From assembly GCA_002811645.1 (NCBI GenBank), contig PDIP01000026.1:124001-188000 (forward strand): 64,000 bases of DNA. Direction: 5' to 3'. A model generated the notes under the pieces. It was given only the letters and a program-made list of their open reading frames with translations. It searched no databases and was not told where the DNA came from. Position numbers and translations under genes: made by a program. This DNA is from Corallochytrium limacisporum Hawaii (lineage: Eukaryota > Protista > Pluriformea). Below, piece by piece: positions 8,530 through 29,531 of this stretch (positions within the stretch are counted from its first letter, which is position 1; every line of letters begins with the position of its first letter).

Positions 8530-8541
8530 TTTCGCGCCAAA
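8530..8541. promoter_or_regulatory. Candidate E2F site upstream of WAPL
   Basis: TTTCGCGCCAAA matches the TTTSSCGC consensus on both strands, ~290 nt upstream of the WAPL ATG. Confidence 0.5.
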
Positions 8542-8832: not shown

Positions 8833-11376
8833 ATGAAACGGTCTGGTATGCCCTCAAAAACAGATCCTTGTACAAAATCCCAAGAATCTAAGGCAAGCGT
8901 ATACGAATTTGACGATGCAGAGGACGAACCGACCAAAGCTAAAATTGGTGCGAAGGTCCAAGAAGGTCAGGCCAGTGTATATGACTTTGACGATGAGGAA
9001 GACGGTTCAGTGGGTATCCAGGGGAAGAGCTTGAAGCCACCACAAGCACGTGGAAGGTCAAGAAGCCGGAGTAGAAGTGTTGCTCGTAGCAGATCAGTCA
9101 GTCAAAGCAGTAGCAGAGGTCCGTCACGGGCATCCTCAAGGGAGCGAAGTCCGGTGAACAAGAAGACGAAGGTAACCCCGACGGAACCAGCTATTGAAGA
9201 GAAGGAAGTCGATGAAGATCCCTATGGCTTTGGTGACTTCGCAAAAGCACAAGTACCCGAGTCAGCACCGCCATCGTCCCCGAAGAGCAATTCACCATCC
9301 AGGAAGGGAACGGCTAAGACAGGTGTCCCAACTATGTCCTCACCGTTCAAAGACTCGTCCGCTACTCCTATTGCTCGTAGGCCTGGTGCTCGATCTTCTC
9401 CGAACAAATCTCAAGTTGTGAAGATAGATCCTGCCAAGCTGCATGCCTTAAGTCGTCTCAAAGACAGGGTTAAGTCACAAGCTAGTGAACACACGAAGAC
9501 TCCACCGACTGTGCAGAGAAAGTCATCGAGTTCGCTATTCAGAATCGGTAGTTCGGGAAGACGGCCAGTCATGCGAAGTATCGTTGGACCCACTGATGTA
9601 CACACTCCGACGCAGGCGGCCCAAGCTGCAAACACAGGGTATGCTAGTCGGTTTCAAGAGGACTTTGATTACTACCTGGAGGGCATTGTGCCACCAGCAA
9701 CCGCAGCGTCTGCTGCTTTGACAGTTATGGCTGTCGCAAAACTGGCTCAAAAAGACTCTGACTTCAACGCGAGGTTGCGACAGGGAAAGAATGGGGCATA
9801 TCTCGACTCAGTCTGTAGTGGCATCATAGCTCATGGATTCGGTGTGGACAACGCCGGCCTTGCTTTGGCTTCTGCGTATATCTTTGCGACGTTGGCACAG
9901 GACCCTAACGAAAGTTTTGTTCCTCCTCAAGGTATTCGCGTTTTGGCCAATATCGTTCTGAAGCATGCTAAGAGCTTTACCATTGTCGGTGGACAATCAC
10001 GGATTCCCAAAGCATGTGAGCCAATCGTAAACCAAATACGTCCCCAAATTTCTTTCTTCGATGTGGATGCTCCAAATATTGCGCCGGATCAGAACAATGA
10101 ACATCTATTGTCAGGAATCCCATCTGAGATGGCTCTGTTCGCGGTTTATCTTCTGAGCCATCCGGAATCTCAGGGTATGGACAAGAAGCTGATCAAACAA
10201 ATTCTGCGTGAGGATGCTCGTGTGATAGATCCGTCCACGTCTGCGTCATGGACGCCAAAGCCCGTATTGACGACAGCCAAAGGGTCTCCAAGCCTTCTCA
10301 GTTTCACTGTGGGACTGGCGATGGATTTGATGCGAAAGTTTCTGAAGGGTGACACATCGTTTACAAGACTTGATCTCTGTCTCAAGGTATTGGAAAATGC
10401 AACATTTGAGGATCAGGATAACGTTAACTTCCTTCTAAAGGACAGAGACGGCAGAATCGTGCAGGCAGTATTGGCCTTTCTGAACGGATTCCTGAAGGAC
10501 CACCGCATCGAACAAGTAGCTGAAGTCGCTGACTTTTCACAGATAAGTGGAATTTCGTCAATCAATTCAAGCGCTTTGAACAACAACCTCAACAACACGG
10601 CCACGAGTGTGAGCAGTTACAAACAACCTGAGAGGGAGCCAGAATACTTCGACCTGGATGAAACTGATGCATGCATGTCGGCACTGCGTCTGTTAGTTAA
10701 CCTAACCCATCACAATATGCATGGATGTCAGACTATTGCCAACAGTGATATTGGATTGCAAATCATTTGCCACGCAATTATTACTTTACCTCTGGCAGTG
10801 GTGCCTGGTCGTCGGCACGACTTTCGTGCGATTGGAATTGGTTTGCTCATCAACATTGCCGAGCAACACCCTAACTTCAGCGAGAAAATCATCAAACAGG
10901 ACCTGGGCAATGAGTTGGCGCTGGAGCGCTTCACTAGAATATTGAAGCACTGCCTCACAGCTGACAAGGCATCGAAGGCCAAGAAGGATGCCGTAAACAC
11001 CAGCACGTCTTCTGCTGGCGACGAAGGCATTACGGAGCAGTTTGTGATTGCAGCATACTTGTGTATGCTCTTTGGTATCTGCTGTCGCAGCTGCCCGCGC
11101 TATACGGACTATGTCCTCGACATGCTGCCGGAGCCAAAGGCTGTCCTCCTAATTCACACCTTGCAACATTTCTTAGAATTCAAAGAGGACTCTGGTCTCG
11201 CTCACGATGATGAGATCATCGCTGTTGTCCAGGTCGTAAAATTTCTAGAGGATCGCGTCGATCCAGACCTGGTGATCAAAGAAGACAGTGACAAAAACAC
11301 CAAGGAAACGAAACGGCGAGAGTCTTCGGGTGAAAGTATCCAGGAAGTTATCCAGAGCGAATTGGGTGACATCTAA
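8833..11376 (+). CDS. WAPL: Cohesin release factor WAPL (Wpl1/Rad61 family)
   Basis: 847 aa. Disordered Ser/Arg-rich N-terminus with YxF/YGF motifs, then a helical WAPL domain: FQEDFDYYLEGI, LCLKVLENATF, ALRLLVNLTHHN, GIGLLINIAE, AAYLCMLFGICC. Confidence 0.85.
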   Translation: MKRSGMPSKTDPCTKSQESKASVYEFDDAEDEPTKAKIGAKVQEGQASVYDFDDEEDGSVGIQGKSLKPPQARGRSRSRSRSVARSRSVSQSSSRGPSRASSRERSPVNKKTKVTPTEPAIEEKEVDEDPYGFGDFAKAQVPESAPPSSPKSNSPSRKGTAKTGVPTMSSPFKDSSATPIARRPGARSSPNKSQVVKIDPAKLHALSRLKDRVKSQASEHTKTPPTVQRKSSSSLFRIGSSGRRPVMRSIVGPTDVHTPTQAAQAANTGYASRFQEDFDYYLEGIVPPATAASAALTVMAVAKLAQKDSDFNARLRQGKNGAYLDSVCSGIIAHGFGVDNAGLALASAYIFATLAQDPNESFVPPQGIRVLANIVLKHAKSFTIVGGQSRIPKACEPIVNQIRPQISFFDVDAPNIAPDQNNEHLLSGIPSEMALFAVYLLSHPESQGMDKKLIKQILREDARVIDPSTSASWTPKPVLTTAKGSPSLLSFTVGLAMDLMRKFLKGDTSFTRLDLCLKVLENATFEDQDNVNFLLKDRDGRIVQAVLAFLNGFLKDHRIEQVAEVADFSQISGISSINSSALNNNLNNTATSVSSYKQPEREPEYFDLDETDACMSALRLLVNLTHHNMHGCQTIANSDIGLQIICHAIITLPLAVVPGRRHDFRAIGIGLLINIAEQHPNFSEKIIKQDLGNELALERFTRILKHCLTADKASKAKKDAVNTSTSSAGDEGITEQFVIAAYLCMLFGICCRSCPRYTDYVLDMLPEPKAVLLIHTLQHFLEFKEDSGLAHDDEIIAVVQVVKFLEDRVDPDLVIKEDSDKNTKETKRRESSGESIQEVIQSELGDI

Positions 11377-11459: not shown

Positions 11460-14400
11460 TCAGGATCGGAATTCTTCCAGCACATTCCACAGCTCGTTAG
11501 TGACATTGGTAATGTCCAAAATGATCGCTCCGACGCGACTGATGCCAACCAAACCGTGGGCCTTGTTCATGATGCGTTCTTCTCGGAGAGACTGCAACAT
11601 TCGCACCGCACCACTCTGACGCACCGCGGTCTTAGCCCGTGAAGAATCCCATACCGTCATGTGCAAGCAATGCAGGGCCAAAAATGAACGCTCGCAAAAC
11701 AGCACACGTTGGCGGGCATTGGCACGTAGCAAATCATCCACCTCGGCAGCACCGACGATCCCCTGGATTAGATTGCGCTGATGTGTGAGGTAGGACGTTT
11801 CATGTGCTACCAGCCCAGCGAGGTCCTCGGTTAAGGCTCCAGCCAGAGCAACTACAGCTCTGACCATCTCAGCGTTTGTGAACCACGCGTGCTTGCCGAG
11901 ACCACCACAGCCTTCCTTGTTAGCGCTCATGTTGCGTAGCAGGAGCAGAGCAATACATTGCAATTGATAGCTCACTGACGGGCTATTTTTGTCATTTACT
12001 AATAGGTCACTGATGACATCCAGAATATAGTCACATCGCCGCAGAACGGACCTTCCAACAGAAGACATGGACATGGCCATGAGCACGCGCATGGACCATT
12101 CTCGGATACAGCGTACCCAGACATTGAAGCTTTTGTTGTGTCGGCTGTACAGAGTCCTAGATTTCAGTAGTACTTCCTGGCACAGATATGCTGGCACACT
12201 GCGACGGGCCAGAGCCGCAACACCTTCCGGTGTTGAACACAAAGAGAGGAAGATGCGCATGCCGATCTCCATGATCGCACCAGACTGCTCGCTGCGCAGC
12301 TCGCTGCGCTGCACTAAAGTGTTGATGTGCTCTTGAACCGCGTCCAAAATGAGATCGTAGGCACCTAGCGCATGCGTCACCTTCTGATTGAGCTGACCGT
12401 TGTACTTCGAAATGCGGTTCACCATAGCAATTGGTAAGGATTCAGTGACTGGCACGCGCGCCGAGAGCAATGCAGTCGTGCCTTTCGTACCGGCATTGAG
12501 CAAAATATCCACTAGACAAAGGACTGCGCCCCACAGCTCGACGTGCCATCCACTGCCGAGCATCGCCAAACAGTGTCTTATTGCATCCGAGCAAGAGCGA
12601 CCACCGAAGTCTGGCAGATCTGCGTGCCCTTCTACAAACGCGGCCAGTAGGCCAAGGTCATCTATCAGGCCGTTGACATTTACCATAGAGTAAGTCTTGC
12701 ACAAATTTGAAGCAATTCGATTTCCGGCCGCAGTGACAATGCGCTCGTTGGCCTGACTGGCAATCCGCACATCAGTACGCATTCTATAGATCTGACCAAG
12801 TAGCCAGATTGTACCTGTTGCGGTGTCGTCCAGACCGGTAGAATCGTAAGACACCCGGGTGCCAATGCTCTCCGACATGAATTCCAGAATAACTAAGACG
12901 TTCTGTCCCGTACTGAGAATGGTTTGCAGTTGCGTCTGGGGTCCAAGCTGTAGAGTCAGCATGATGGCTTGCAGCAAAGACTCAAGTGCCGCCATAAGTT
13001 GTGGCCTCAGGAATGCTGTTACATGTTGTCCAGCTACTTCGGTATCCAATGTCATAACGTAACCAATCATTTCACTGAGTACACTGAGCTCGCCAGTTTC
13101 CATATGGTTGCCAGGTGGATTTAGGAGAAACTTTAGGATGGGACCGTGGAAGTGTTCTGACGCACAGAGACATGCCCGCATCATGTTACTGGCTTCAATC
13201 AACAAACGCATCTGTTCCACATATGCCTCCCGCAATTCACGCATGGGCACAAACGTCTCGTTCTCAGAAAGGAGGTCTTCATAATCGCTCAAGTCATCCA
13301 GTGATTCCTTCAAATACCGTATTAGTGTGGGCACGAACACCTCAAAGTGCTTGATGAGACCAAGCAGTGTGTCCGCGTTGCGGTCGCCGAGACTGGACTC
13401 CGGGCCGAGTTCTCCAAGAGTCAGTGAAGGATCGCTGAATATGGATGTTATCATGTGACAGATCTCATTGAGTAGAGCATGTGCTTGTTGCATAGCGGCA
13501 GCATTCTCCTCGATCAACGGGTTCTCAAGGTGTCCCATGAAATCAAACAGTTCCGCTATAGGTTCAAGATTCACATAGTGGCGAGCAATACTGTCCAATG
13601 CCAGATTAGTCCAAGCACCCAATGCCTGGCGCACCAGCGCAAACAGAGAGTAACGCAGGGACGAAGACGGATTTTCGAGCAACACGGTTAAAGCTTCAGT
13701 GAAAGTCCGCTCCACAAAGGCACAGAGAATGCTGGGATGGATGGCAAATGCATCCTGCAAAGCATCTGTCTTTGCCAGCAGAGACCGGGCATAGACATAC
13801 GCACCAATCTGTCTCAGAGACTCGGTGCGATAGGCAATACAATCTGTTCGTCTGTGCAGGACTCCCTGTGCCAAAGCATCCAGGTATGTTTGGTTTCCGA
13901 GAAGAACATCATGACCACACATTGAGTGTGTCATAATCAAGTTTGTCAATGCGGAGAAGGGATAGAAGGCGTCTCCCAACTCCAAAGCGTTTTTCAGAAG
14001 CTGTTGGCACAAAGCTTTCGCATCATCGACCATAGAAGATGATGGGATGGGGCCACGAATTAGTCCTTGGCTAGTTCGCATCAACGAGTGTAGAGCTGCG
14101 ACAGCAATCGTGGTGCTTGTGACCAGCGATCTTCGGGCAAAATCGTTTGTATCGTGCTCGGCACATCGACGAAGAATTTTAACGACTACGGTGTAGGACT
14201 GCTTCAATGAGCCAAAGCCCTCGGACATCCGTCGTGCGCTCTCTGTACCCATCGTCACACTTGCTGCGAAGCTTTGGCCAATCTCTTGGCCACTATAGGC
14301 ATGCGCGCCAAAATTCAACATAAACTGGCGTGATTGTTCGACGTGCACAAGCACACGACAAATACACTGGGCAATTGTGGGATCGAAGACAGCTGCTTCT

Positions 14401-17400
14401 TCACCGAGAGCGTCCATCGCCTCGATGACGCTGACGTGGATCTGGCCTAAAATCTGCAGGAATTCACCTTCCCACTCACATCGTCCCATCATGCAAGAGG
14501 ACAAGAGCTTCTCTATTGTGCTCACAGTCTTCCGGATGCCTCGCCGCGTCAAATTTGGTGGTAAGGGGATGGACCAGCCTGGTCCATATGCATCGTATAG
14601 TCCTGGATGGCTGAAAGACTCGTGTACACTGAAGCCCTGACAGAGAGTAGTCAGGCACTCTCGTGCAAAATGTTCCCGAGCCATTCCGATTGTGCCATGT
14701 CGGGGAGTGCCTTGTTCAAAAATTGCACAGTGGTCAAGCAAACTGTCACAGAGATACATTAATGGAATGATGGCATCGTCGTCATGACTAGCACCCAGGT
14801 CTCTGGCATACAAGCCAACATAGCCTAACGCCTCAATGGCGGATTCGAGAGAAATGTACGAGTTCGTCATGGGAACAAGGGAAAGCAAATTCTCCAAGTC
14901 AGCCAAGAACGACATGCTTGAAGAAACCCCAAAGACCGTGCATTGATCAACCAGAAGCCTTACAAGACTGGTGCCGGACGCGGGATTCGTTTCACGCTCG
15001 TACTTGGTTACAAGCATCTGCCGTAGGGCGGCATGCAAATTGGGCACATACGGTTCGTAGACGCTGCGCATCTGATAATAATCGATAGATATGGGTATCT
15101 GAAAGTTGCGTCGAAGACTGTACGGCATCTTGATGGGCCCTTGGTTGCTGAGATTAGTCTCCGGCTGCGGCCGATCACTGTTCGAAGGGCTCTGAACTCT
15201 TTCATCCTGTGTGAAAACATCCACACATCGGTGACGCAAAGCTCGCATAACCTCATCATCGAAGCCAATGATGGAGAGGATAGCCATAACTTTGCCACTC
15301 AATGTCCCATCCGTAAACATCATGTGGCATAGGAACCCGACGAACTGCGCAACCACATTCCGGCCCTCATGATGGTGCACATAAGCCTTACACAGCTCCA
15401 GGAAGATGAGTACGCACACTGCTCGCTCGCGGCTGGTTGCTGTTTTAGATTCACAACGGTCTTGAGCAGATTTCAAATGACTAGGGGTACAAAGCTCCTG
15501 TACCTCACCATCGAATGAGTACGCCGCGACAGACGCGAAACGCCGGGCGAGGGATACCCGCAGCTCGCCCTCCAAGTGAGAGTCCCACATGGTAGCGTAC
15601 AGATCACGAGCTGACTCGTGCGCTGTTGGCGGAATAGGATCAATCTCTTCGTGTTCGGCCAGCTTCATGGCCTCTGCGAAGCGAAGAATCTCATCAAAAG
15701 TATGGTGGTCATGTCCCTTCTCCGATTGAGACTGAAGAAGAAGTTTCCGAAGCGCGTAGGCACGACATTCCGATGAGATGTGGAAGAGTAGTCGACATAG
15801 GCTGCATACGATAGAGGAACGAAGTAGCTCTTCGTCGGTGCGCTCGATACGGCTGTGCACATCCCTCACGACCTTCCACATATCAGTGTCCTCAACAATG
15901 TATCCTTCCAGGAATGGCAAAACGCAAACCAATGTCTTTTCGAGAGCACTGTTGTGGTTTGCCTTTGCATTTATATGCTTGATAATGTCGAAAGCATGGT
16001 TGCGAGTCTCAGTCTCAGTGTCATACAATCCAAAAGCTGCGATTTGATACACGCAATCCGTAGTGACTGCAAGTTCCCAGACTGGAGGTTCCTCCGTAGC
16101 GATCACTTTCTCTATGCAGGAATACATAAAACTTCTCACATTCGCGTTTGTGTGTGCTAAGAGCTTGAGAACTTGCAAAGTACCTTTTTGGATGCCGTCA
16201 TCCGGATCAAGAGACACATGTGCCTGTTTAAGAACCGCAAAGGCAGTATTCATGGCAGCTTCGTTATCCAAAATTCCGAGAGCGTCGATGAAGTTAAGGT
16301 AGTGATCATTAAGCTCTGTTGAGCTTTCCTCGCTCTGACCGACATCTTCGCCACAATGATACAGATGTATCGCCTGGATGGCCTGAACATACTTCATACA
16401 CAAATCTAGGTCACCCATGAAGGAGTCACCCAAGCGATCAAGCAGGTCTCTACATATTGAGAATATCCAGGGCCGATTGTTCTCGATTGCGCCGTCGCAG
16501 ATGACTAGACGTGCTCCTGCTTGTACCGCGATGGGAAGGGTATCACGTAACACATCGACTGGCACGGACCGACTGAGGACCTCTACAATACGGAATCCAG
16601 ATAGCAGTATCCGACTACCTTGTGGGAATGGCGATGTACCATTCATATGAAGCCGGACTTGGGGCCCGATACCACCAATAATACTCTGTCCACATTCAAT
16701 CTCTGACATGAAGTTCAGTAAGTGTCCTAGTTCTTCAAGGAATGGCTTGAAATGCAGTAGGTCTAGGGGACAGTCGTTCTCTAAGCAGTGCTCACAAACT
16801 TTGGCAACGTACTCTAATCCCTCTTGAATAGTCCACAATATGCCTGCCTTGGTTTGGGATCCTTGCTGGTAGCTCACGGTCGCCATCCGCAGAAAGATGG
16901 TTCCAACTACTGACAGTGTGTCAGATACCCCGACTGCGTTCGGCGTTGAAGTCTCCGACCACAGCTCAGGGAAAGGGGGGGCAGTCATACCGATGCTTGT
17001 GCTGCGCATGCGATTAAGTGTGGCGCCCATCAAGGCCACCAAGGCCGTCACTTCCGAGTATTGGGACCACCGTGTCACTTCCTTCAGATTCTGAGATTGC
17101 TCTATCGACTGCAATCGTTTTAAAAGCAAACGGAGCAACATTCCATGGTGAAAAATGATCTCTGCTGGACAATCCTGGAGCACGACCGACTCAAAGAATT
17201 CCATGTCATCCGACGTTTCTTTCTGTAGTGATATGAAGATCTCATCCAGTGATTTATAGGATGCCTTGAGAGTTGTCTCGTTTGGTGGCTGAGGCAGACA
17301 CCGATACATGGCATCAGATTTTAAAGTCTCTTTGTCAGTTCGACCAATAGGTGCCATCAGAGATGCAGAAGGCACACCGAGGCCCACAGGTGAGTAGCGT

Positions 17401-18191
17401 GCTGTCTGTGTCTCGATCGATGCTGCCAGCTGGGAACCTACTAGCGGTGACAACTTGGTAGAGGGCGGTTTCGCTAATTGTGAACTTTGGGCCGAGGACC
17501 GTTTTGATGGGTAAGTTATAGGGCTTGACTGAGGCCTCCCATGGAATGGTGTGTCAATTGCTTCGCTCAATTCCTTCGCGATCTTTATGCTATTTGATGC
17601 CTCAAAGTACGGCGCATGCGATGATTCACCGGGCATACGCGCCGGACCGGCCTGTACAACTCCAGATGTGGCCACTCCGTTCGGATCTGATACCTCCTGC
17701 TCTAACTCACGCTTCCTAATCGGCAGTGTTGCCGCTTTTGCCTTACCATTTAGTTGCTTTAAAGCAACTCGCACATCCGCAGGCACTGTCCGCGAAGCCT
17801 TCTCTTGCTCTCTCTCCGATGGTCCGAGAGCCACAAGATTTGTGCCCGCCGCAACGTCGATAGCTTGAAGAGCATCTACTCCTCCGCAGCTTCTGAAAAC
17901 AAGGTATGTTTGGGCATCCAAAAATAAGTACTTGAGTATGGTTTTCAAGGGTGGAGTGCTTTCATTTAACACCTGTACCGACCCGGAATCTGTCGTTGCT
18001 TCCAAGCACTTCACTAAATCTTCAATGAAGACAATATCTGCTCTGAGGGCTTCGACACTAACTAAGCCTAGCTCCAGTTTTTGTGCCACGTTCTTTAAGC
18101 TCCGAATGCGAATTGCATCAATTGGATGAGAGACCTTCCTTCGCACTAGTCGGTTGGGCGAATTCGGCCTCAGTGATTGGAGCACTTCCAT
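11460..18191 (-). CDS. RTTN: Rotatin (centriole/basal body armadillo-type protein)
   Basis: 2243 aa, the size of animal rotatin. N-terminus [29 protein letters not shown] resembles rotatin [40 protein letters not shown] resembles VIMQDFPAEIF. The rest is Leu-rich and helical. Confidence 0.8.
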   Translation of the reverse strand: [2243 protein letters not shown]

Positions 18192-19049
18192 GATTAATCT
18201 AACCAGACTCTGTGACCTGAACGTCCCGTGTCCTACTATTCATGTCATCATTGCTTTCATTTTCGATCCATTTTCAGCTCAGGACATGGTTTACCACATA
18301 GTCGTTCTTAGTTTTGTCCTGGACCTATTGATTTACCTGCTGACTACTGTGCGGCCCGGGAGCCAACTGCAGGTGTTAGGAGTCAGAGGCACCCTCCCGA
18401 AGTCCTCACGAAGTCGCGGGCTTTTTGGAAATTCCGGCCCCCCCCCCCCACTCTTGGACTTTTGGCGCGCTTCCTGTCACGAAGTTTCCCTCTTAAAATA
18501 GACCCCCGTTTGCTCTTTCTCCGTTTCAAAGGGAGCTAAAGAAGTTGCCCGGCGCCCGTTTTTTGAAATTCGGCGCCCGGTAGTGGAACTACCGCAATCT
18601 GGGAGGGAACCGCAATAGTCTCCAAACTGAGACTCAGTTCCGAGTGGGTACACTGAACCTACCGACCGCAGGCGGCGGAGGCCTCGGTCGCCGAGACTCG
18701 CCGATGGGCCAAAACCTCCCAAAAATGGAAAAGACACTGACCTCTTTCGGGGGAGAAATGGTCCCGTGGGCCGTCGGGCAGGGCCCTACCTGCTAAACTG
18801 GTTGCTCCGATTGCGCAGGTAGGAAAGGGCTGCAGACGGACACATGATGGCAGATACCGGATCTGGAACGCCTATTTAATAGAGATAAGTCGACTAGTAA
18901 GTTTCAAAGGGCAGGTGTTTTGGGAAGATATGCAAAGGCTGTTGACCAGGGTGGGAGCTAAGGTGGGTTAGATCGAATGCTCTGCTGTCACGGAATTCTC
19001 TAATCAGAAGCCGGGCGCACAATCACGCACTGCCATCGACGAAGGATAG
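18192..19049. promoter_or_regulatory. Divergent promoter between RTTN and NEK with E2F and CHR-like motifs
   Basis: TTTTGGCGCGC at 18460-18470. TTTGAA or its complement at 18525-18530, 18562-18567 and 18903-18908. CGGCGCCCG occurs twice (18550-18558, 18571-18579), flanking one TTTGAA. Confidence 0.5.
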
Positions 19050-20684
19050 ATGTATAAGCCTTCAGAACCTAAGGGTCCTGTGATCATTAAGCAGCACATA
19101 CATGTTGCCATTGAAGAACAACGTGCTCACGTGCGCAAGGAACAAGAGTTCGTAAGAAGACGACAGCAGCGAGAGCTGCAGCAGCAAAGGGAGGAGGAGG
19201 AAGCTGGGATCCAAAGACATATTGAGCAGAAAAGGCCCAATCTTCCAGGCTGCGGCGCCCAACCCCCGGACACAAAATATCGCTTAGTTCACAGGTCAAG
19301 TAGCCACAAATCAACACAGCAACGCAAATGTATAGACGGCGATCAACGCTATCAAATCCTGGACGAGATCGGAGATGGTGCGTTTGGGAAAGTGTTCAAG
19401 GTCAGGTATGACCCGAAAGATGGTCACCCTCCAGATATTGTCGCGGTCAAGAAAATTAACGTAGCCTCTATGACGCGAGAGGAGAGGTCCAGAGTTCTCT
19501 TGGAGGGCAAAATTTTGTCGGTGATGAAACATCCCTTCATAATTCGATTTCGAAGCATGTTCTACAGCCAGGACAAACAGAGCTTGTATCTCTGCATGGA
19601 GTTAGCTCCCGGGGGAGATATATGGTCAGCGATCCGCCAACGACGACGAGAGCTCCGCGCAGGCAAGGAGACTTACTTCGATGAGGGGCATGTCAAGCAA
19701 TGGATGATTCAATTGGGCTTGGGGCTTGAATTCGTGCATTCGCTCAAAGTGCTTCATCGTGATATCAAGACACAAAATGTTTTTATCAACTCCAAAGGGA
19801 TAGCGAAGATTGGCGACTTTGGCATTTCCACCGTCCTGTCAAATACGAAAGATCTTGCTTGCACGGTTGTTGGCACTCCATACTATCTTTCGCCTGAGCT
19901 CTGCGAGAGAAAGTCTTACAGCTTTGCTACTGATATTTGGTCCATGGGTTGTGTTTTCTATGAAATGATGAGCCTCAAACATGCGTTCTCAGCGCGGGAC
20001 ATTAAGCATCTCTTGGTTCAGATCCTCACGGGAAAGTATCCACCATTGCCCCATTTCTACAGTCGTCAACTGCGTGAAGTGGTCTATTCCATGCTGGCCA
20101 TGGATCAAGCAGAGCGACCAAGCATCCGGGCTGTTTGTAAGCGACTGGTGCTCAGAACAGAGCTGCTGGCCAATATAACCTCACAAAAGCAGCACCAGAG
20201 AATCATGCAGACCCCAGACGATGGCAAGGCCAATCCAAAATATACTCCTGACGATCGCGAGCTTGTCGGGGAAAGACTCCGGAAACCAAGTTACCAACCA
20301 AAAGAACCGCAAGACCTTGACATAAGTGAACCGGACAATGTCCAAAGGGCATTCCTAGACCAGAAGCTGCCTGAAGACATTGTGGACTTGCTTGAAATGG
20401 TGTGCACCAAGATGGGACAGAAAAGCCCATCGGATGCTACCGTCGGGCCTGGTAGTCTTTTCGGTCACATTGAAAACATCAGATTGTTACTGGAACGTCG
20501 CATTGGCATGTACAACATGATGTATCGATACAAAGCTCTTTCGCAAGGTCACATACAAGAGTGTGACAAATGGTATCCTTCGCACCTGAGACCGTATGAC
20601 TTGCTTATTGTCCAGCTTATTAGATGCGAGCTGCGGCTATACTCAGGCTTCAACAGGAAAAAGATCATCATGCACGAGTACTAA
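19050..20684 (+). CDS. NEK: NIMA-related Ser/Thr kinase (NEK1/4/11-like)
   Basis: 544 aa. Intact GDGAFG, VAVKK, HRDIKTQNVF, DFG and GTPYYLSPELC. C-terminal SLFGHIENIRLLLERRIG resembles the NEK1-type tail domain. Confidence 0.9.
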   Translation: MYKPSEPKGPVIIKQHIHVAIEEQRAHVRKEQEFVRRRQQRELQQQREEEEAGIQRHIEQKRPNLPGCGAQPPDTKYRLVHRSSSHKSTQQRKCIDGDQRYQILDEIGDGAFGKVFKVRYDPKDGHPPDIVAVKKINVASMTREERSRVLLEGKILSVMKHPFIIRFRSMFYSQDKQSLYLCMELAPGGDIWSAIRQRRRELRAGKETYFDEGHVKQWMIQLGLGLEFVHSLKVLHRDIKTQNVFINSKGIAKIGDFGISTVLSNTKDLACTVVGTPYYLSPELCERKSYSFATDIWSMGCVFYEMMSLKHAFSARDIKHLLVQILTGKYPPLPHFYSRQLREVVYSMLAMDQAERPSIRAVCKRLVLRTELLANITSQKQHQRIMQTPDDGKANPKYTPDDRELVGERLRKPSYQPKEPQDLDISEPDNVQRAFLDQKLPEDIVDLLEMVCTKMGQKSPSDATVGPGSLFGHIENIRLLLERRIGMYNMMYRYKALSQGHIQECDKWYPSHLRPYDLLIVQLIRCELRLYSGFNRKKIIMHEY

Positions 20685-20707
20685 ACCAGGTAACAATATG
20701 TCCTCCA

Positions 20708-22423
20708 TTAGTCTATTGTCGCGAGCAGAAACTCCGATGTGCTGTTGATAGGATCGAAGAACTCGTCCTCGATCATTTCCACTTCTGCATCTTTCTCCTC
20801 GAGATGTCGCAGCGTAGATCGAATGTTCATGGTTAAGAAGTCTTCACCAGTGAGATCCGGAGTAAGTGATCTCAGGAAGTTCTCCAAGCAAAGTTTCAAG
20901 CCCAGGTTGATAAAATAAGGACGACATTCTACCTGAACAGACATCTTTTGAAGCAAGACACAGAGCCTCTCTTTAACGCGCTTGGTATCAAAGGACATAT
21001 CGTTGATAATGTCCTTGATACTACTGAAGAAGATTTCTGACGCCACAGCACTAACCAATGACTTCAACCAAGGTCCATTGGGCGTCAACAGCAGAAGGAC
21101 CTCGCATGCATGAGGAAGAACTTGCTTGTGTTGCTTTGTGTGAATCATTTCAATGACGATCTGATGGCCGCGGAGTGCAACAAACATTTGCTTCAATTCT
21201 GGATTGTCAAGGTACTGTACAAGGTTCTTGAGCGCAAAAATTTGCTGCTCCACTACGCTAGAGGTGATCAGAATTGCCACACTGGTGAGAACGACATTGC
21301 GCTCGGCCTCGCCCGTTGAATGTAATGTAGTATCCGAAATCTGGTACACATCATTGTTAAGGATCTGCGTATGTAGTAAATCAGCCAGCCGCCTTGATGT
21401 CGCCGGTAGCAGACGTGAACGGACATTGTCCTTCTCTGAATCGCCCGCACGACCTTCAAGTAGCAAGAGCGAAGAGATTGTAAATTGTAGGGGCATCTGG
21501 CAATCCAATTCAGGTACCTTCGCACTCAATCGCAGGAGCTCGACTACACCTGGGAGAACCTGGGCGGCATGTTTCTGATGGCCATGCATTTCTTCTTGCA
21601 TTTCCTGTGGTCCAATTACAGCCTCAAGCTCCATCTGAATATCATTCATCCACGCGCACATAGCAGAGAAGCTCTTCCCCAGTGCGATGACGGCTGCCTT
21701 AGAAGAGCAGGAGCTTCCGCACTTTGGGGCGGCCTGTTCCTCTTTCTCAGCTGTTGGAGCCGTCGTTGTACTCTGTTGTGAGATCTCTCTAGTAAGCGAC
21801 TCCAGTCTCCGGCTTTGCGATGAATTGAGATGTCGTAGAGCACGCACCTTAGAAGTGAGCTCCTCTTTTGCCCGCCTGAGCTGAGCAATCTCATCCTGCA
21901 AGTTCATATGGTTCTGTCTCATCTGCATATAGATTTCACGGGCCCGCTTTTCATCACGTGCCTGCTCGTTGGCTTTATCTTTGGCACGCGAGAGCTCCTT
22001 ATTGAGGGCATCGATTTCTCTATTCTTCTGACGCAAAAGACTGCTCTTTTCTGCCTCAGACTGGGCCCGCAATCGATCAGTCTTCCGCTTAACATCTTGC
22101 TCAATGGCCTCAATCCGTTCTTGGACTTGCTGAAGGTGCCCGCCAACAGATACGCCCGCTGTTTCAATGGCGGCTTCAAATTCCACTTCCCGGCGCTGTA
22201 CTTCCGCTTCCCGTACGGTCACCTTGTACAGCCGTTCCTCTAATTGACTCTTAAGTGCAAGAGTTTCATCTAAGGCAAGTGCCAGACGGTGCTGTGCAGC
22301 TTCTTCTTCTATCACATCACCGAGATCCTCGTATGCAAGGGGCTCCTGTCCCTCTGTGTCACTTTCGAGGTCGTCATTCCTAAGCATTCGACCCTCGTGT
22401 ACATGAACGCTGGCGGTTGCCAT
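20708..22423 (-). CDS. CCDC138: Coiled-coil domain-containing protein 138-like (centrosome/satellite-associated in animals)
   Basis: 571 aa. N-terminal coiled coil. C-terminal KERLCVLLQKMS...FLTMNIRSTLRHL resembles CCDC138 LEKLSIILQKLS...FLCINLNSTLFNL. Confidence 0.72.
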   Translation of the reverse strand: MATASVHVHEGRMLRNDDLESDTEGQEPLAYEDLGDVIEEEAAQHRLALALDETLALKSQLEERLYKVTVREAEVQRREVEFEAAIETAGVSVGGHLQQVQERIEAIEQDVKRKTDRLRAQSEAEKSSLLRQKNREIDALNKELSRAKDKANEQARDEKRAREIYMQMRQNHMNLQDEIAQLRRAKEELTSKVRALRHLNSSQSRRLESLTREISQQSTTTAPTAEKEEQAAPKCGSSCSSKAAVIALGKSFSAMCAWMNDIQMELEAVIGPQEMQEEMHGHQKHAAQVLPGVVELLRLSAKVPELDCQMPLQFTISSLLLLEGRAGDSEKDNVRSRLLPATSRRLADLLHTQILNNDVYQISDTTLHSTGEAERNVVLTSVAILITSSVVEQQIFALKNLVQYLDNPELKQMFVALRGHQIVIEMIHTKQHKQVLPHACEVLLLLTPNGPWLKSLVSAVASEIFFSSIKDIINDMSFDTKRVKERLCVLLQKMSVQVECRPYFINLGLKLCLENFLRSLTPDLTGEDFLTMNIRSTLRHLEEKDAEVEMIEDEFFDPINSTSEFLLATID

Positions 22424-23063
22424 TGCGCGAGGTTTATTTCCAACTCGTCTGCAACTATCGTCTTCTGATAACTACATCAGGTCGGAAATTTCCTCCGCCA
22501 TATCATTTTATCCTACCAAGTGCCACCCTAGGATCAGAGAGTGCGCCCTTCATGAGGTGGTCCGCCCTGCTCTCTTCTATACCTCGAGCGAAGTCACCAT
22601 CTGGCAGAGCCTGCCGAAGGGCTCTCAGCACTGGGCGAACGTACGGACGGGGGACAGTAGGGAAGTGGGTCCGCGTAGGAGTCACGGCCTGCCAGAACGT
22701 CATATTTTGGGCACTTGGAATTTGCAGGGTGGGGAATTCATTTGCGGGGTTCCGGTTTTGCATGGTTATATTTTTTGGCGCGCCATTTTCATTTCTCTGC
22801 GCGGTCGCCAGCCTCGCGGACCGGCCAGAGGTCGCTGGGTGTTGGGAGGGCGGGTTCGTTTCCCTACACGGGCTTTCCAAGGGTATTTGAGGGATCCTTT
22901 GCGTATGAGAATTTGAAGCCGGTGTGTAATATCTCTCAACCAGCCGACTTCGACGGCCTGCAGTAGTATGAATATCAACAGCTTTAATGAATAAATTCGA
23001 ATAACAGACACGAACTAATGATGTGATCACTGCCGGGAGGAAATGAACTAGTTTCCAACAAAG
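22424..23063. promoter_or_regulatory. Divergent promoter between CCDC138 and the giant coiled-coil gene, with E2F and CHR-like motifs
   Basis: TTTGGCGCGCCA at 22774-22785 and TTTGAA at 22912-22917. Confidence 0.45.
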
Positions 23064-26000
23064 ATGGCTGAAGGAGCGCGTACAATATCCTTCACGGAAG
23101 TCCGGCCGGGTCGGACGTATAGACGGCTCATTACTATCACAAACGAGTCACGGTCTCAAGAATTGAAGAATTTACGGGTTCTTGTGGCAAATGGCACTGA
23201 TCGACTGTTGCTGCGATCACCCGACCAGACCATCAGTACTGCGAACTCCAGTGAACCTATCAACGTAGATCCACTTAGAACTGTGACATTTTCAGTGGTT
23301 CTCAGGGAGCTGAATGACAATGACGTTGCGCTGTTGAAACAGTTGGGACCAAGACACCGGGATCTTTTACTTATTGAGGATGAGGAACACAAATTGCAGG
23401 AAGCGATATATGTCAATATTGCCGTTGCTGATAATCTTTCAAGCGTGTCCTCGGCGTCCGAGACCGCCTTTGGGGTGAAAGACCGGTCTGGTTCAACTGA
23501 GTTCCAAGCTGAAACGAACGACGAAATTTTGATTAACCTGTCGGCAGATCACGGTACGAGCATCGCTGGAGAAGGCGAAGGCACAGAACACGACCTCACT
23601 GAGTCGAATCCGATGAGTTCGTTGGAACCTACAGAACCAGGAAGAACAGGGAAACCGATTCTTGGACCCGGCAGGCAAGTACCGCGACTAGAAATTAGGT
23701 CGCCATTGACGGCTTCCATGGCGGCCAGCAAGGTGGCATCTCGGTCACATGTCTCTTCCGGATCACTGCAGGAGAAAGTGGCGGGCAAATCAGTGTCTTT
23801 GGAACCGAGGCCGGTACCAACCTTAGAGAGAACCCAAGGCGGTTCAGCTAGAATTCCACAGCCGACACTGCTCACATCTCCCCCAGCATTCATCCCGGGT
23901 ATTGATAAATATGCTGTGGATGAGACAAATGAGGATAACCGCCAGACGCAGGAGCAGATTGTCAATGAGCTGACTAGGACGAACCGAAGTTTGCTCAATC
24001 AAAACAGCCTTTTGGAGGAACAGCTTTCTGAAGTTCAAGGGCAGTTGAGAAGTCTTATTGAAGAACAAACGGAGGAAGGACGACAGCATTCTATTAATGG
24101 GCGATCTCTTGAAGAAACGAAAGCCCAGCTTTCCAGGTCCAGAGCTGAGGTACGAAAGCTACGGGAAGACGTGGATGATCTCAAGATTGAGTTACAAAAG
24201 ATGCGTAGTGTTGAAGAAAGCTTAGCAACACAAAAGGAAGCACTTATAGCGGATAATGAGAATCTGTCTCTTCAAGTTGTCCGATTGCGTAAGCAGAAGG
24301 CAGATGCAGAACTCCAGATCTCTACACTCCATGAGACCCAGAGAGAGCTTGAGAGAGCAAACACACGTATCGAGACTTTGAAGAAGGACAACACAGAGAT
24401 TGGCGCAACTGCCTCATCCACGCAGCTGAATTTGGAAGATGCCTTATCTGCATTGAAACAGCGAGATGCCCAAGTGGAGAGCCTTGGTCACATATTGAAC
24501 GAGGCTAGGTCCGCTGCGGCAGTTAATGAGCAGAAAATCAAAAATCTGAAGGCAAATTATATGATGCGCCTGAGATCAGAGCGTGCAGCAGTGGACAAGC
24601 TAGGATTGGAATTGAGTCATGCTCAACGGCGGGAACGTGAGCTACTGATGAAGCAACAAATTCATGAACTAGAGAACGCAGTGCCAACTGTGTCAAATCT
24701 CAGAGGTCCATCTGGTCAAGAACGATCAACACGGCCGCAGAGACATGTTGCAGTCAGTGTTCAACAAGACGCTCCTGAGATACCGTCTTTTGTAGTTGAC
24801 GATACGTCTTTCAGAACACCAGTATCGCCGTCGCGCGGGGATCAAGAGAATGCGACTTCAACCCCAATTAGACGATCAACTGAGAGGAGAACAGAAGACT
24901 CCGTTGTTGCCGAACCTGTTTTCCCAACCCATGAAGAGGAATCGAATACGGAGTCTTCGCATACTCAAAACTCAGTCCGGATCATGGATCTTGAAAGACA
25001 GGTGGCATCACTGGAGGCACAGCTTCAACAGGCGCGACGTGACGCATTACTACAGGTCACGGAACATAATGGTGAAATTCGGGGCATCAGAGAACACTTC
25101 GAGAAGACCAATCAGGCCATGCGTGAGGCCTTTTCACGTCAAATTAGTTCATGGCAGGCACGCCACTTTGATCAGAGTAGAATAGCAACAGCTCAAAAGA
25201 AGCAATTGGACGCGCTTGGACGATCCCTGCAGGTCACGCGAAACGATTTAGGCCACCTTCGCTCTCAGGTGTCAGAAGCTAATGCACAGAACAGTATCCT
25301 CTTCGACACGATGGAGACTCTGTCTGGATGCCGAACGACTGAAGAACGAGAGGCTGTGTTGCTGCGAAGCTTCCAGGCTGTCATGATTTCTGCAAAGAAT
25401 CTTGAAGATGTTGTGCAAAAGTTAGGTAGTCCGCATGATCAAGGTGAAGCTGCAGATATTGCCGAAACGCGGGTATTACCCGAGGAAAGCGAAGGCATGT
25501 CACAGGCTGTCCAGGAATATGAACGCGAGATTAAGGCCCTCAGAGAACAGCTCGAGGCTCAGGAAACAGCGAACCTTCACACATGTATCGAAAAGCTAGA
25601 TGTTGCTTTGAATGCTGATAGCCACATTGCGGAACTGAAGGCTCTTGAAGCTCGATGTGCTGCGCTTCAAAGCATGGTCAGTAAGAAAGACGAGGACTTC
25701 GATGCAAGCCTTGGTGAGGTGCATCAGCGATTTGCACATGATCTGAATACCATTCAGGTCAGCATTGAGAGTGTGCACAATGAAAGTGCACATAATATGG
25801 GTCAGGCCGGCCAGGCGGCCTTCAAGCAGATAGTGACACTTGTAACTTCCGTGCGCGATTCTCTAATGAGTGGAAAGCCTGACTCACGGAACGTACAAGT
25901 TCTCCTCAGTCGTGCACTGCAGTGTGCGCATAAGGGCGGTGCGTGGAGTTCGCGAGCCCAGCGAAGACTGTCCGGGGCCGAAGAGATCATCCGACAGGTT

Positions 26001-29000
26001 TGCCAAACTCTGGCAAGTCGTGAACAGACAGTTCTGCGGACCACTTCCCAGCTTCGTGCTGCAGAGCTCGAGTTGGCATGGCATCGTGACCAACGACCTT
26101 CGCTTCTGTTCTTGAGACGTGGAGAAGCCAACAAGGTGATCGATACAATGTTCGCCCAACGCGCCCGCGACAGAGACCTGATGAATGAGCAGCAGCGTAC
26201 TATTACTGCAATGCAACAACAATTGCGACAGATGGAGGATGGCAAAGGTCACATGGAGACCGCAACCAAAACATTGAAATCGAAATTCGAAGCAGTGAGC
26301 GAGGACATGTTGAATCGATTGGAAGAGTTGGCACAGGAGATTGCCCGAAAATGGGAACGAGAAGCTGCTCAAAGCTTGACACAAGAGACGCTTCAGAATT
26401 TGATAGAGAAGGATGATGAAAACGCCGGGGTGATTCGAGCTGATGCTACACTGCTTGCCCTCGCCACCTCTCGAGTGTCTGAGGCCATCCTCACCACTGG
26501 TAACACGTACCTGAAGGAATTGGTGCTCGACGCAAAATATCTTCTAAAGGACTGGCAAACTATTAACCGACAAACCCTGCCCCTTCGTCTAGATGACACA
26601 GCTGCCTCTGAGAGTTTGTCGCACGTCATCAACACAGACGTATTGCGTGCTTCTGAAGCCCACGAGCGCTCTGTTGCTCTTGAGATGCAAGCGCTGGACC
26701 AGGAGAAGGAACTTGCAGCAGTGCGACAAGAACTACAGGGATTACAATCACTACAGGAAGTGGTTCAGATACGAACAGGTGACAAGGAAGTGATCACCGA
26801 GCATCTATCAGAGTTCCTCAATGCAGATATCGCAGCCATGACCCGGGAAAGACGAGAGTTGCTGCACCGGGTGCAGCAGTATGAGATAGCGGAGAGTGAG
26901 ATGAAGGCAGCTCTTGCAGAGAACGATCGCAATCAGGAAGCGGCAACAACCCGTATTAGCTCATTGCAAACACAGCTGGCAAGAGCGACAAGTTCACTCG
27001 CTCTCGCTGAGGAGTCTCGTGTGGAAGTCGAGAAGAAATTCGAAGACATTCAAGCCGATGCCAATCGTGCTCGTTTGTACCAAGAGAAACTGGAGATTTC
27101 TGAGAGACGGGCGCGAGAACTGGACCTTTTGGTGGTGGATCTTCAGGAGCAACTTAAGAATGAAAAGGATGATCATTATCATCTTGCGCAAATTGCCGCA
27201 CAGTTGGAAGAGGCGAATGATCCCCAGCTGGGCATGGAGCCTGAGGCTGCGAGTGAGAGCGCGCGTCTGGTCCAGCTTCAACAGGAGCTTAAGCAGTCGC
27301 GAATGCGTGAGATTCATGTAAATTCACAGCTACAACGTGTGCTGGAGGACCTCAGTGATGCGAAAGTCAGTCCCGAACCTGGCAATAAGCCAGGTCGGCT
27401 GACTGATGATAAACAGATTTGCACAATTCAGACGCTCGAGAGCCAGATAGCCAGGCTCAGGGCAGAACTGGCCAATATGCGGCAATGGAAGGTACGAGCC
27501 CAGGAGTACCAAGCTCAGACCCGTGCCTCAATGCAAGAAGCTACTCGGACAGCTCAAAGACTCCGAGAGGCGGAACGTGATTACAATAGCAAGCTGCTGC
27601 AATGGCAAAGTTTATCTGAACACGTCGCCGATGTCTTCGCTCAGCAGTCAACCATTGAAGATCAGGATCACTATGACCGTATCGGACGCATCATTGACGA
27701 GCATAACCGAGGAGGTGTCCTTTTGCAGGAGCTAAATGTTCTCCCTGGAGCTCAGGCATCAGCTCACGTACCGCAGATGAAGGAAAATTTGGCAGAACTG
27801 GAAAGCAAAGTGCAGGATACCTTCTCCAAACTGACAGACATCATTCCCAACGGCTTGTACGACCAGTTGACTTCTTGCTTGTCCCGTGCCAAGTGGATCG
27901 GCGAGCGAGAACCTGGTGACCTTGCCCAGGATGACGAGCTCACCCTCTTTGCTCTTGCAAATCGCACGGCAATGCTCAAACTATACGCTGACACTGCGAA
28001 ACTGTGCTTGACGTCATTAGAGAAGAATCGGAGTTTGAGACATGTGCAGCAGGAAAACGTTAGCCCAAATCTTAAGCCAGGAAAAGCGCGCGGTAAAGGC
28101 AAAGGTAGATCTGGCTCAATGAAGCGGGCCGGCCTGGTCCGGGTGGATCGCACGCTACTCATTGATTTGCGAGCCACAATCTTGGTTCTCTTGCGCCTTG
28201 TGTATAGTCAAATGGCTGGAGCGCAGTCCATTCCCTTCGATGCCGCGCAGAAGGTGATACAGGAAGACCTCTACAGTATGCAAAAACTTCAACAGGACGC
28301 TACAAAGCAGCTAATGAGACGACCTCCGTCCCTGAGCACCTCAACATATTCCTTGTTCGGCAACCCTGCAGTTGCTCAACACCATGATGATACCGAGGTC
28401 AGAAGCGAACCACCAGCAGGTGGAGTCCAGCAGTCGGAGGCAGAGACCGAGGGCAGCATCAGGGAGATGGTTGACTGTGGTGTCCAAGTGGATTATCTCA
28501 GCGAACGAGAGAACGATCTGCTTCGGGACATTGAGGAACGAGATCAGAGGCTGGTCCAGGCCTCACGGTCCATCGAGGAATTACGCAACACTGCCACCGA
28601 GGCTGCAGATCAATCGGAAGCATTTCGCAGGCGCTTAGTTGCGGAGAAACAAGGCCGTGAGAATCTTGTTGCTCAGCTTTCAGATGCTCGTCGCTTACTC
28701 AAGGAGGCCCATGATAACAATACTGTCCTGGATTCCGAACTACATAAGGAATCAGAGCGTCGCAGAAGAGCCGTGCAGGACAGCAAGACCAAGGAAGAGC
28801 TCATTGGCCATCTTCGTCAAAAGCTGGCCAGTGTTGAAAAGCAGGTGAATCCTTTGAGGGATGATGTCAATGCGCTTGCAAAGCAGAACGAATCATTTCG
28901 AGTCGAACTGGAGCGTCGAGAGAAGAGCATGAAAGACATGCGGGCGCGTCTGGAGGTTCAGTCCTCACGAAAAACGGATGAAGAGGCCATAATCAAAGAT

Positions 29001-29531
29001 TTAGAGAACAAGTCTCACCGCATCCAGCAGCTCCTACTGCAAGTGGAGCAGGACGAGAAGGAAAAGAAGCAACTGCGGCTCCGGGTTAGAGATGAACAAG
29101 AAAGAGTTCGCAAGCTTCAGGAGGAGGCCGAGAACGTGGGATTCTATATTGCACCTCCACGGCAGCTCCTCTTCATGCTGCGCCAGTTTGGTAACACGAT
29201 TTTTGATGTTGCTGTACAGGGGATGAGGGAAAGGGGAGACACTACACTTTCTTCCGAGGTCACAGACGAGGGTCTGCAGCTTACAATGATGTCCATTGCT
29301 CACGATATGTTAGACATGGGAAGCATGGACTTTGCTACCTTCATGTCTTCTGATGAAGGTACGGAACACATGCAAGCGCTTGCCATGCAAGTGCCAGAGC
29401 TTGCCAGCCTGTACAACGTGATCCAGGAAGTCTTAGCACACGCCTTGCATCCGTCTGGGGACAGTTCTTTGCTGGACGCTTTCAAGGACCTCAACACTGT
29501 CATGCGGACCGCGCTCATGCCATCAGCCTGA
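23064..29531 (+). CDS. Giant coiled-coil protein with N-terminal Ig-like (ASH-like) domain; tentatively centlein-like
   Basis: 2155 aa, E/Q/L/R-rich heptads. N-terminal beta-rich ISFTEVRPGRTYRRLITITN resembles ASH/MSP domains. C-terminal SIAHDMLDMGSMDFATFMSSDE resembles the centlein tail as I recall it (SLAASILNISRSDLEEIL). The CDS is secure; the orthology is tentative. Confidence 0.7.
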   Translation: MAEGARTISFTEVRPGRTYRRLITITNESRSQELKNLRVLVANGTDRLLLRSPDQTISTANSSEPINVDPLRTVTFSVVLRELNDNDVALLKQLGPRHRDLLLIEDEEHKLQEAIYVNIAVADNLSSVSSASETAFGVKDRSGSTEFQAETNDEILINLSADHGTSIAGEGEGTEHDLTESNPMSSLEPTEPGRTGKPILGPGRQVPRLEIRSPLTASMAASKVASRSHVSSGSLQEKVAGKSVSLEPRPVPTLERTQGGSARIPQPTLLTSPPAFIPGIDKYAVDETNEDNRQTQEQIVNELTRTNRSLLNQNSLLEEQLSEVQGQLRSLIEEQTEEGRQHSINGRSLEETKAQLSRSRAEVRKLREDVDDLKIELQKMRSVEESLATQKEALIADNENLSLQVVRLRKQKADAELQISTLHETQRELERANTRIETLKKDNTEIGATASSTQLNLEDALSALKQRDAQVESLGHILNEARSAAAVNEQKIKNLKANYMMRLRSERAAVDKLGLELSHAQRRERELLMKQQIHELENAVPTVSNLRGPSGQERSTRPQRHVAVSVQQDAPEIPSFVVDDTSFRTPVSPSRGDQENATSTPIRRSTERRTEDSVVAEPVFPTHEEESNTESSHTQNSVRIMDLERQVASLEAQLQQARRDALLQVTEHNGEIRGIREHFEKTNQAMREAFSRQISSWQARHFDQSRIATAQKKQLDALGRSLQVTRNDLGHLRSQVSEANAQNSILFDTMETLSGCRTTEEREAVLLRSFQAVMISAKNLEDVVQKLGSPHDQGEAADIAETRVLPEESEGMSQAVQEYEREIKALREQLEAQETANLHTCIEKLDVALNADSHIAELKALEARCAALQSMVSKKDEDFDASLGEVHQRFAHDLNTIQVSIESVHNESAHNMGQAGQAAFKQIVTLVTSVRDSLMSGKPDSRNVQVLLSRALQCAHKGGAWSSRAQRRLSGAEEIIRQVCQTLASREQTVLRTTSQLRAAELELAWHRDQRPSLLFLRRGEANKVIDTMFAQRARDRDLMNEQQRTITAMQQQLRQMEDGKGHMETATKTLKSKFEAVSEDMLNRLEELAQEIARKWEREAAQSLTQETLQNLIEKDDENAGVIRADATLLALATSRVSEAILTTGNTYLKELVLDAKYLLKDWQTINRQTLPLRLDDTAASESLSHVINTDVLRASEAHERSVALEMQALDQEKELAAVRQELQGLQSLQEVVQIRTGDKEVITEHLSEFLNADIAAMTRERRELLHRVQQYEIAESEMKAALAENDRNQEAATTRISSLQTQLARATSSLALAEESRVEVEKKFEDIQADANRARLYQEKLEISERRARELDLLVVDLQEQLKNEKDDHYHLAQIAAQLEEANDPQLGMEPEAASESARLVQLQQELKQSRMREIHVNSQLQRVLEDLSDAKVSPEPGNKPGRLTDDKQICTIQTLESQIARLRAELANMRQWKVRAQEYQAQTRASMQEATRTAQRLREAERDYNSKLLQWQSLSEHVADVFAQQSTIEDQDHYDRIGRIIDEHNRGGVLLQELNVLPGAQASAHVPQMKENLAELESKVQDTFSKLTDIIPNGLYDQLTSCLSRAKWIGEREPGDLAQDDELTLFALANRTAMLKLYADTAKLCLTSLEKNRSLRHVQQENVSPNLKPGKARGKGKGRSGSMKRAGLVRVDRTLLIDLRATILVLLRLVYSQMAGAQSIPFDAAQKVIQEDLYSMQKLQQDATKQLMRRPPSLSTSTYSLFGNPAVAQHHDDTEVRSEPPAGGVQQSEAETEGSIREMVDCGVQVDYLSERENDLLRDIEERDQRLVQASRSIEELRNTATEAADQSEAFRRRLVAEKQGRENLVAQLSDARRLLKEAHDNNTVLDSELHKESERRRRAVQDSKTKEELIGHLRQKLASVEKQVNPLRDDVNALAKQNESFRVELERREKSMKDMRARLEVQSSRKTDEEAIIKDLENKSHRIQQLLLQVEQDEKEKKQLRLRVRDEQERVRKLQEEAENVGFYIAPPRQLLFMLRQFGNTIFDVAVQGMRERGDTTLSSEVTDEGLQLTMMSIAHDMLDMGSMDFATFMSSDEGTEHMQALAMQVPELASLYNVIQEVLAHALHPSGDSSLLDAFKDLNTVMRTALMPSA

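Follow-up and report, generated by a model that had tools for sequence, protein, structure and literature searches.

We analyzed a 64,000-nucleotide (nt) stretch of the genome of Corallochytrium limacisporum Hawaii (contig PDIP01000026.1, positions 124,001 to 188,000; C171:124001-188000 in the contig numbering used here), hereafter called the window, in which four consecutive genes of apparent centriolar type occupy positions 11460 to 29531. A preliminary description had read these genes as RTTN, a NEK kinase, CCDC138, and a giant coiled-coil protein in two head-to-head pairs, and had proposed that they form a physically linked, coregulated basal-body module. The genome of this species comprises 24.1 Mb and 7,535 genes with almost no introns (PMC5560861), and the 24.1 Mb are distributed here over 286 contigs. 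The four open reading frames (ORFs) of the block are intact, with no internal stops and no N, and their strand order is -, +, -, +. No further credible gene or tRNA was detected between them (11460 to 29531). The block and its left neighbor contain the following features, in window coordinates:

8833 to 11376, + strand: WAPL, a cohesin release factor and not a centriolar protein (Pfam WAPL, E = 8.1e-14, over the cut-off); left neighbor of the block
11460 to 18191, - strand: probable rotatin (RTTN), an ARM/HEAT-repeat protein of 2,243 amino acids (aa) (RTTN_N profile, Atlas)
18192 to 19049, no strand: RTTN/NEK divergent promoter region, 858 nt, with TTTTGGCGCGC at 18460 to 18470
19050 to 20684, + strand: NEK-family kinase, 544 aa (Pkinase, E = 1e-59; best PDB match NEK1)
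20708 to 22423, - strand: CCDC138 homologue, 571 aa, with an N-terminal coiled coil and a CCDC138_C domain (Pfam PF21035, E = 8e-19)
22424 to 23063, no strand: CCDC138/giant divergent promoter region, 640 nt, with the palindromic TTTTGGCGCGCCA at 22773
23064 to 29531, + strand: giant protein, 2,155 aa, with an Ig-like N terminus, coiled coils, and a helical C-terminal domain

The layout of two head-to-head pairs was confirmed. By ORF coordinates, NEK and CCDC138 end exactly 23 nt apart and WAPL abuts the block on the left, its end lying 83 nt from the stop of the RTTN-like ORF; the gaps within the divergent pairs are 858 nt (RTTN-NEK) and 640 nt (CCDC138-giant). Orientation statistics were compiled from 80 curated adjacent gene pairs in the window and 20 other regions of the genome. 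Head-to-head pairs numbered 30 (gap of at least 460 nt), tail-to-tail pairs 23, and tandem pairs 27, with 53 of the 80 being head-to-head or tail-to-tail. Tail-to-tail gaps (n = 23) had a median of 97 nt, the three shortest being 23 (NEK-CCDC138), 33, and 47 nt. Since head-to-head arrangements are frequent and tail-to-tail gaps often narrow, the geometry of the block is ordinary for this genome, with 23 nt at the low end of the range. A polycistronic operon is ruled out, since the genes alternate strands.

We examined the identity of each product. CCDC138 was borne out by a Pfam match to CCDC138_C (68 bits against a cut-off of 26.6) located C-terminal to the N-terminal coiled coil; a word search returned the query alone or nothing. 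Vertebrate CCDC138 localizes to basal bodies (PMC5488662), and we firmly assign the gene to the centriolar class. The CCDC138 frame has a further ATG 78 nt before the start codon, and the tenth codon from it is TAG (window 22424 to 22501, - strand). This could be a small ORF preceding the gene, an intron of 27 nt with GT-AG ends, or a premature stop within an N-terminal extension of acidic character. For rotatin, the RTTN_N match at residues 27 to 66 falls below the cut-off (E = 0.049, 14.8 bits against 25). RTTN_N is nonetheless the only family that matches residues 1 to 150, and a whole-genome search with this profile returned a single candidate, on the N terminus of the block ORF. The length of 2,243 aa and the ARM/HEAT repeats agree with the roughly 2,200 aa of such repeats expected of rotatin. 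Atlas look-alikes were ARM/HEAT proteins (RICTOR, MEI1, BRAT1, and rotatin), with rotatin only at rank 11, and neither a word search with the C terminus nor PDB yielded a sequence relative. The ORF at 11460 to 18191 is thus probably, as described, rotatin.

The block kinase is certainly a NEK as judged by its sequence: its top 16 PDB matches are all NEK1, NEK2, or NEK7, with NEK1 (1e-64) ahead of NEK2 (6e-50). Its assignment as a NEK1/4-type kinase is less secure, as one of three paralogues in the genome, on C55, matches NEK1 better (2e-87) than the block NEK does (1e-64). By eye, these paralogues, which bring the NEKs encoded in the genome to four, look NEK4-, NEK6/7-, and NEK2-like. The block NEK may be of the NEK1/3/5 or the NEK4/11 type, and its role is uncertain; NEK11-clade kinases are not centrosomal (PMC2031824).

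The giant protein had been described as an ASH-like coiled coil akin to centlein. Residues 1 to 125 gave three weak ASH-clan matches in a profile search (ASH, 0.04; Cep192_D4, 0.07; Ig_CFAP74, 0.1), and a genome-wide ASH profile search missed this N terminus. AlphaFold models were built from single sequences and were poor (predicted local distance difference test [pLDDT] scores of 34 and 54). The N terminus was modeled as beta structure at low confidence (pLDDT 34), and its best fold matches (Z = 4 to 4.9) included the CEP192 SPD-2 domain, Hydin, and MSP. The weak profiles and the fold search agree, and the N terminus (about residues 1 to 125) is probably an Ig-like domain of the ASH/MSP type. 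The remainder of the protein is coiled coil, and its Atlas matches were generic coiled coils. A resemblance of the tail to centlein was not confirmed: no relative of the protein was found by word search or in PDB, residues 1780 to 2155 retrieved only themselves in an exhaustive search of 1.84 billion representatives, and an Atlas fold search with the C terminus gave only noise. Poor conservation leaves centlein without a clear orthologue among protists (bioRxiv 10.64898/2026.07.08.732882), so that the lack of a match neither supports nor excludes a centlein identity. The giant is a fast-evolving coiled-coil protein and probably centrosomal. Of the four products described as centriolar, CCDC138 is firm and rotatin probable; NEK and the giant are candidates.

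To determine how centriole genes are arranged elsewhere in the genome, we mapped 27 other centriole, microtubule-organizing center (MTOC), and NEK genes by profile search of the contigs. They lay on 24 contigs, with no pairs closer than 20 kb (0.6 expected) and two pairs closer than 50 kb (1.5 expected). SAS-6, SAS-4, CEP135, CEP120, and the delta, epsilon, and gamma tubulins were all on contigs other than that of the block. We then examined 10 kb around 19 of the mapped genes, annotating neighbors mostly by Pfam and the rest by eye. Neighbor counts were based on 14 seed genes selected without prior hints about their neighbors, a set to which MDM1 does not belong. One of the 28 immediate neighbors was centriolar (CEP135, beside CEP44; 0.4 to 1.1 expected for a class of 100 to 300 genes), and 13 of the 14 seeds had no centriolar neighbor. 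In this small sample of 27 mapped genes and 28 neighbors, centriole genes were no closer together than in shuffled gene orders. The spacing resembled chance and revealed no strong clustering, contrary to what had been proposed. The PPP1R35_C, CEP76-C2, and TEDC1 profiles had no match in the genome, which is not evidence that the genes are absent. Scans of metagenomes for synteny yielded no relatives. A RING protein beside SAS-4, considered as TRIM37, was rejected as centriolar on its RING-LysM-FYVE architecture.

Both divergent regions of the block share the 11-mer TTTTGGCGCGC, which we take, from the generally known consensus, to be an E2F-type site. In the RTTN/NEK region it lies at -271 from the RTTN ATG and -588 from the NEK ATG; in the CCDC138/giant region the palindromic TTTTGGCGCGCCA lies at -352 from the CCDC138 ATG and -289 from the giant ATG. 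WAPL is also preceded by a palindromic E2F-type site (8531 to 8540, -302), so that five consecutive genes carry an upstream site, from only three promoter regions. The exact 11-mer has 50 copies in the genome, compared with 12 for a control, and occurs upstream of SAS-4, CEP57, and DZIP1 (P of about 0.002 with a conservative null).

Motif enrichment was assessed in 600-nt upstream regions of 17 centriole genes dispersed over the genome and of other genes (77, or 79 for the 7-mer). TTSSCGC preceded 13/17 centriole genes and 27/77 others (P = 0.002), and the strict site TTTSSCGC preceded 8/17 and 10/77, respectively (P = 0.003). The top de novo 7-mer was CGCGCCA (8/17 versus 3/79). The E2F-type sites mostly fall 150 to 400 nt before the ATG, a range that excludes the NEK site. 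Cell cycle genes homology region (CHR)-like TTTGAA elements were found at 18525 to 18530, 18562, and 18903 to 18908 in the RTTN/NEK region and at 22912 in the CCDC138/giant region; enrichment of CHR-like TTYGAA was not significant (12/17 versus 38/77, P = 0.09). Three loci carry E2F_TDP (E2F/DP) genes. In a 682-aa two-domain E2F7/8-like gene, an exact 11-mer (C88:206418) precedes the DNA-binding domains (C88:203613-204233) by ~2.2 kb, and autoregulation is possible. Another exact copy (C5:28369) lies on the contig of CEP44 and CEP135. In vertebrates, E2F4 is found at the promoters of centriole genes (PMC4083089), and human RTTN, CCDC138, and CNTLN appear with many other centriole genes on a list of S/G2-M genes (PMC6788831). 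A literature search turned up no description of E2F sites at the centriole genes of unicellular holozoans, which is a weak negative. The presence of an E2F-type site in each divergent promoter makes shared cell cycle regulation of the block plausible. That part of the proposed coregulated linked module survives via predicted sites; the linked module itself finds less support, since the same site also precedes dispersed centriole genes.

The preliminary description had also inferred a centriole or a cryptic flagellated stage in this organism. The centriole is real and already published: transmission electron microscopy showed centrioles in C. limacisporum, which undergoes open mitosis from centriolar MTOCs (PMC11153136). 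Because the centrioles serve open mitosis, the block genes do not point to a cryptic flagellate, and that inference was rejected. Matches to a CFAP20 domain (C274:96488) and a TPH domain (C280:11245) contain in-frame stops, which fits decay of flagellar genes; the centriole genes examined are intact.

With moderate confidence, we interpret the block as chance neighbors within a genome-wide E2F regulon and not as a centriole module. Because the other centriole genes are scattered and the same E2F-type signal precedes them wherever they are located, the adjacency most probably arose by chance. The four genes would be transcribed separately, in a compact and almost intron-free genome in which alternating orientation is common. 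Coregulation would most likely act in trans, with E2F/DP factors binding 150 to 400 nt upstream of centriole genes at any location and so timing their expression to the duplication of centrioles for centriolar open mitosis. A single palindromic site in a bidirectional promoter probably serves both CCDC138 and the giant gene, and the site in the RTTN/NEK region probably serves rotatin only. The adjacency would then be incidental or at most mildly favored, with selection on the linkage presumably absent.

Several results weigh against this interpretation. The 95% confidence interval of the neighbor rate (0.1 to 18%), from a small sample, leaves room for mild enrichment. CEP44 (+ strand) and CEP135 (- strand; identified by PDB matches 7bji, 5fcm, and 9qzc) lie tail-to-tail, 94 nt apart (L015:4800-9525; C5:48799-53524), and MDM1 (C223) lies head-to-head with a 73-aa MOZART-like ORF (L022:7389-7610, + strand; MZT1, E = 0.002; MZT2, E = 0.009). 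In simulated gene orders, with the size of the centriole class (K, 150 to 300) assumed and not counted, a run of four had P = 0.001 (K = 150) to 0.018 (K = 300) if all four genes count, and P = 0.005 to 0.06 over any of 15 to 20 gene classes. Runs of three had P = 0.05 to 0.37, and P was 0.15 to 0.33 (K = 150 to 200), ranging up to 0.72, for at least three of four consecutive genes being centriolar. Because a run of three is not unusual by simulation, the block is notable only if both NEK and the giant are counted. A clear MZT1 gene is also present on C11.

It is possible, though not probable, that mild clustering is real, with centriole and cell cycle genes adjoining because a shared E2F promoter or open chromatin was favored, and with the block as the extreme case. 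The five consecutive genes with E2F-type sites, the verified CEP44-CEP135 and MDM1-MOZART-like pairs, and an ASH-domain ORF of 1,723 aa at 35 kb from the block are consistent with such clustering. However, 13 of the 14 unbiased seeds lacked a centriolar neighbor, chance alone would give 3 to 12 adjacent pairs in a class of 150 to 300 genes, CEP44 and CEP135 share no promoter in their tail-to-tail arrangement, and the five genes use three promoter regions. A stronger, joint form, in which small E2F-driven blocks of divergent pairs (the C171 block, CEP44/CEP135 on C5, and MDM1/MOZART-like on C223) have old or selected linkages and the giant is a centlein orthologue or a new centriole component revealed by its position, appears rather doubtful.

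An ancient, physically linked basal-body module maintained by selection, with all four products acting together at the centriole, is highly unlikely. A run of four is improbable if all four count, and the identical 11-mers in the two promoters are the only intergenic copies so close together among the 50; however, the core partners listed above lie on other contigs, the giant has no detectable relative, and we found no paper that places the four proteins in one complex. The human counterparts of the block genes are on different chromosomes, which also counts against such a module. In favor of the module, Corallochytrium has kept certain ancient linkages in common with Capsaspora and Chromosphaera (PMC5560861). 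NEK11-clade kinases, to which the block NEK may belong, are not centrosomal (PMC2031824), a further point against it. Least probable of all, and overlapping the chance-neighbor interpretation, is that the cluster largely vanishes (a noncentrosomal giant, a NEK of the DNA damage/nucleolar NEK11 type, and incidental E2F sharing), as might fit the several occurrences per genome expected of two centriole genes one gene apart, the lack of any giant relative, and the distance of the E2F site from the NEK start (588 nt, beyond the usual range), but not the ASH-like giant N terminus (three weak profiles and the fold search) or the E2F site 289 nt ahead of the giant ATG.

The predicted regulon resembles vertebrate E2F/DREAM control (PMC4083089, PMC3874167, PMC6788831) in that E2F-type sites lie in the proximal promoters of SAS-6, SAS-4, CEP44, CEP57, HYLS1, gamma-tubulin, RTTN, and CCDC138, the genes are dispersed, and E2F/DP genes are present. 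It differs in that Corallochytrium is a unicellular holozoan, in which the control is predicted here from motif statistics, and in that CHR enrichment was not significant (P = 0.09). The integrin alpha/beta pair of Corallochytrium and Capsaspora (PMC5560861) is likewise divergent with a short common upstream region, and in the same genome. What so far distinguishes the integrin pair from RTTN/NEK and CCDC138/giant is that its products form a heterodimer and that the pair is conserved between lineages. Fungal and plant metabolic clusters share with the block contiguous genes of related function and a common promoter motif, but they hold most of a pathway, whereas only 2 to 4 centriole genes, out of roughly one hundred or more, lie in the block and the others are scattered. 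Centriolar open mitosis in C. limacisporum explains the intact rotatin, CCDC138, and other centriole genes, although the paper describing it (PMC11153136) does not treat gene order or promoters.

If the block arose by chance, the adjacency itself matters little, as the centriole to which its genes belong has been imaged by electron microscopy before. If clustering were real, gene position could reveal unrecognizable centriole proteins in a nonflagellate that keeps only the centriole core. The value of the locus lies mostly in the E2F regulon on centriole genes and in the orphan giant protein. The fixed spacing of E2F-type sites ahead of most centriole genes suggests that centriole duplication came under E2F control before animals arose, and such control is testable because C. 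limacisporum is transfectable. The giant, as an ASH-coiled-coil protein, is a candidate for a component of the centriole and may be the centlein so far missing outside animals.

Some neighbors of the mapped genes merit mention. The head-to-head partner of WDR90 (L016:3588-4601, - strand) is a RAP1-like telomere protein (BRCT and Rap1_C, weak matches), and that of gamma-tubulin (L028:1008-3713, - strand) is a RecQ-like helicase; both are chromosome genes and could share E2F sites. A MAPK/CDK-like kinase that by eye looks like ciliary MOK (L020:1178-2464, + strand) lies 1.4 kb upstream of FAM161 with an unassigned 209-aa ORF between them. Just 0.7 kb beyond the end of the window, C171:188712 has an ASH-domain match over the cut-off in the 1,723-aa open frame mentioned above, possibly ASPM. 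Elsewhere in the window are a 238-aa bacteriorhodopsin-like ORF (39083 to 39799, - strand), a 439-aa coiled-coil protein without a family match that lies 47 nt from the G-alpha stop and could be centrosomal (41828 to 43147, + strand), and a kinesin motor remnant with large internal losses (46577 to 47473, + strand; Pfam Kinesin, E = 7.5e-18, in two pieces).

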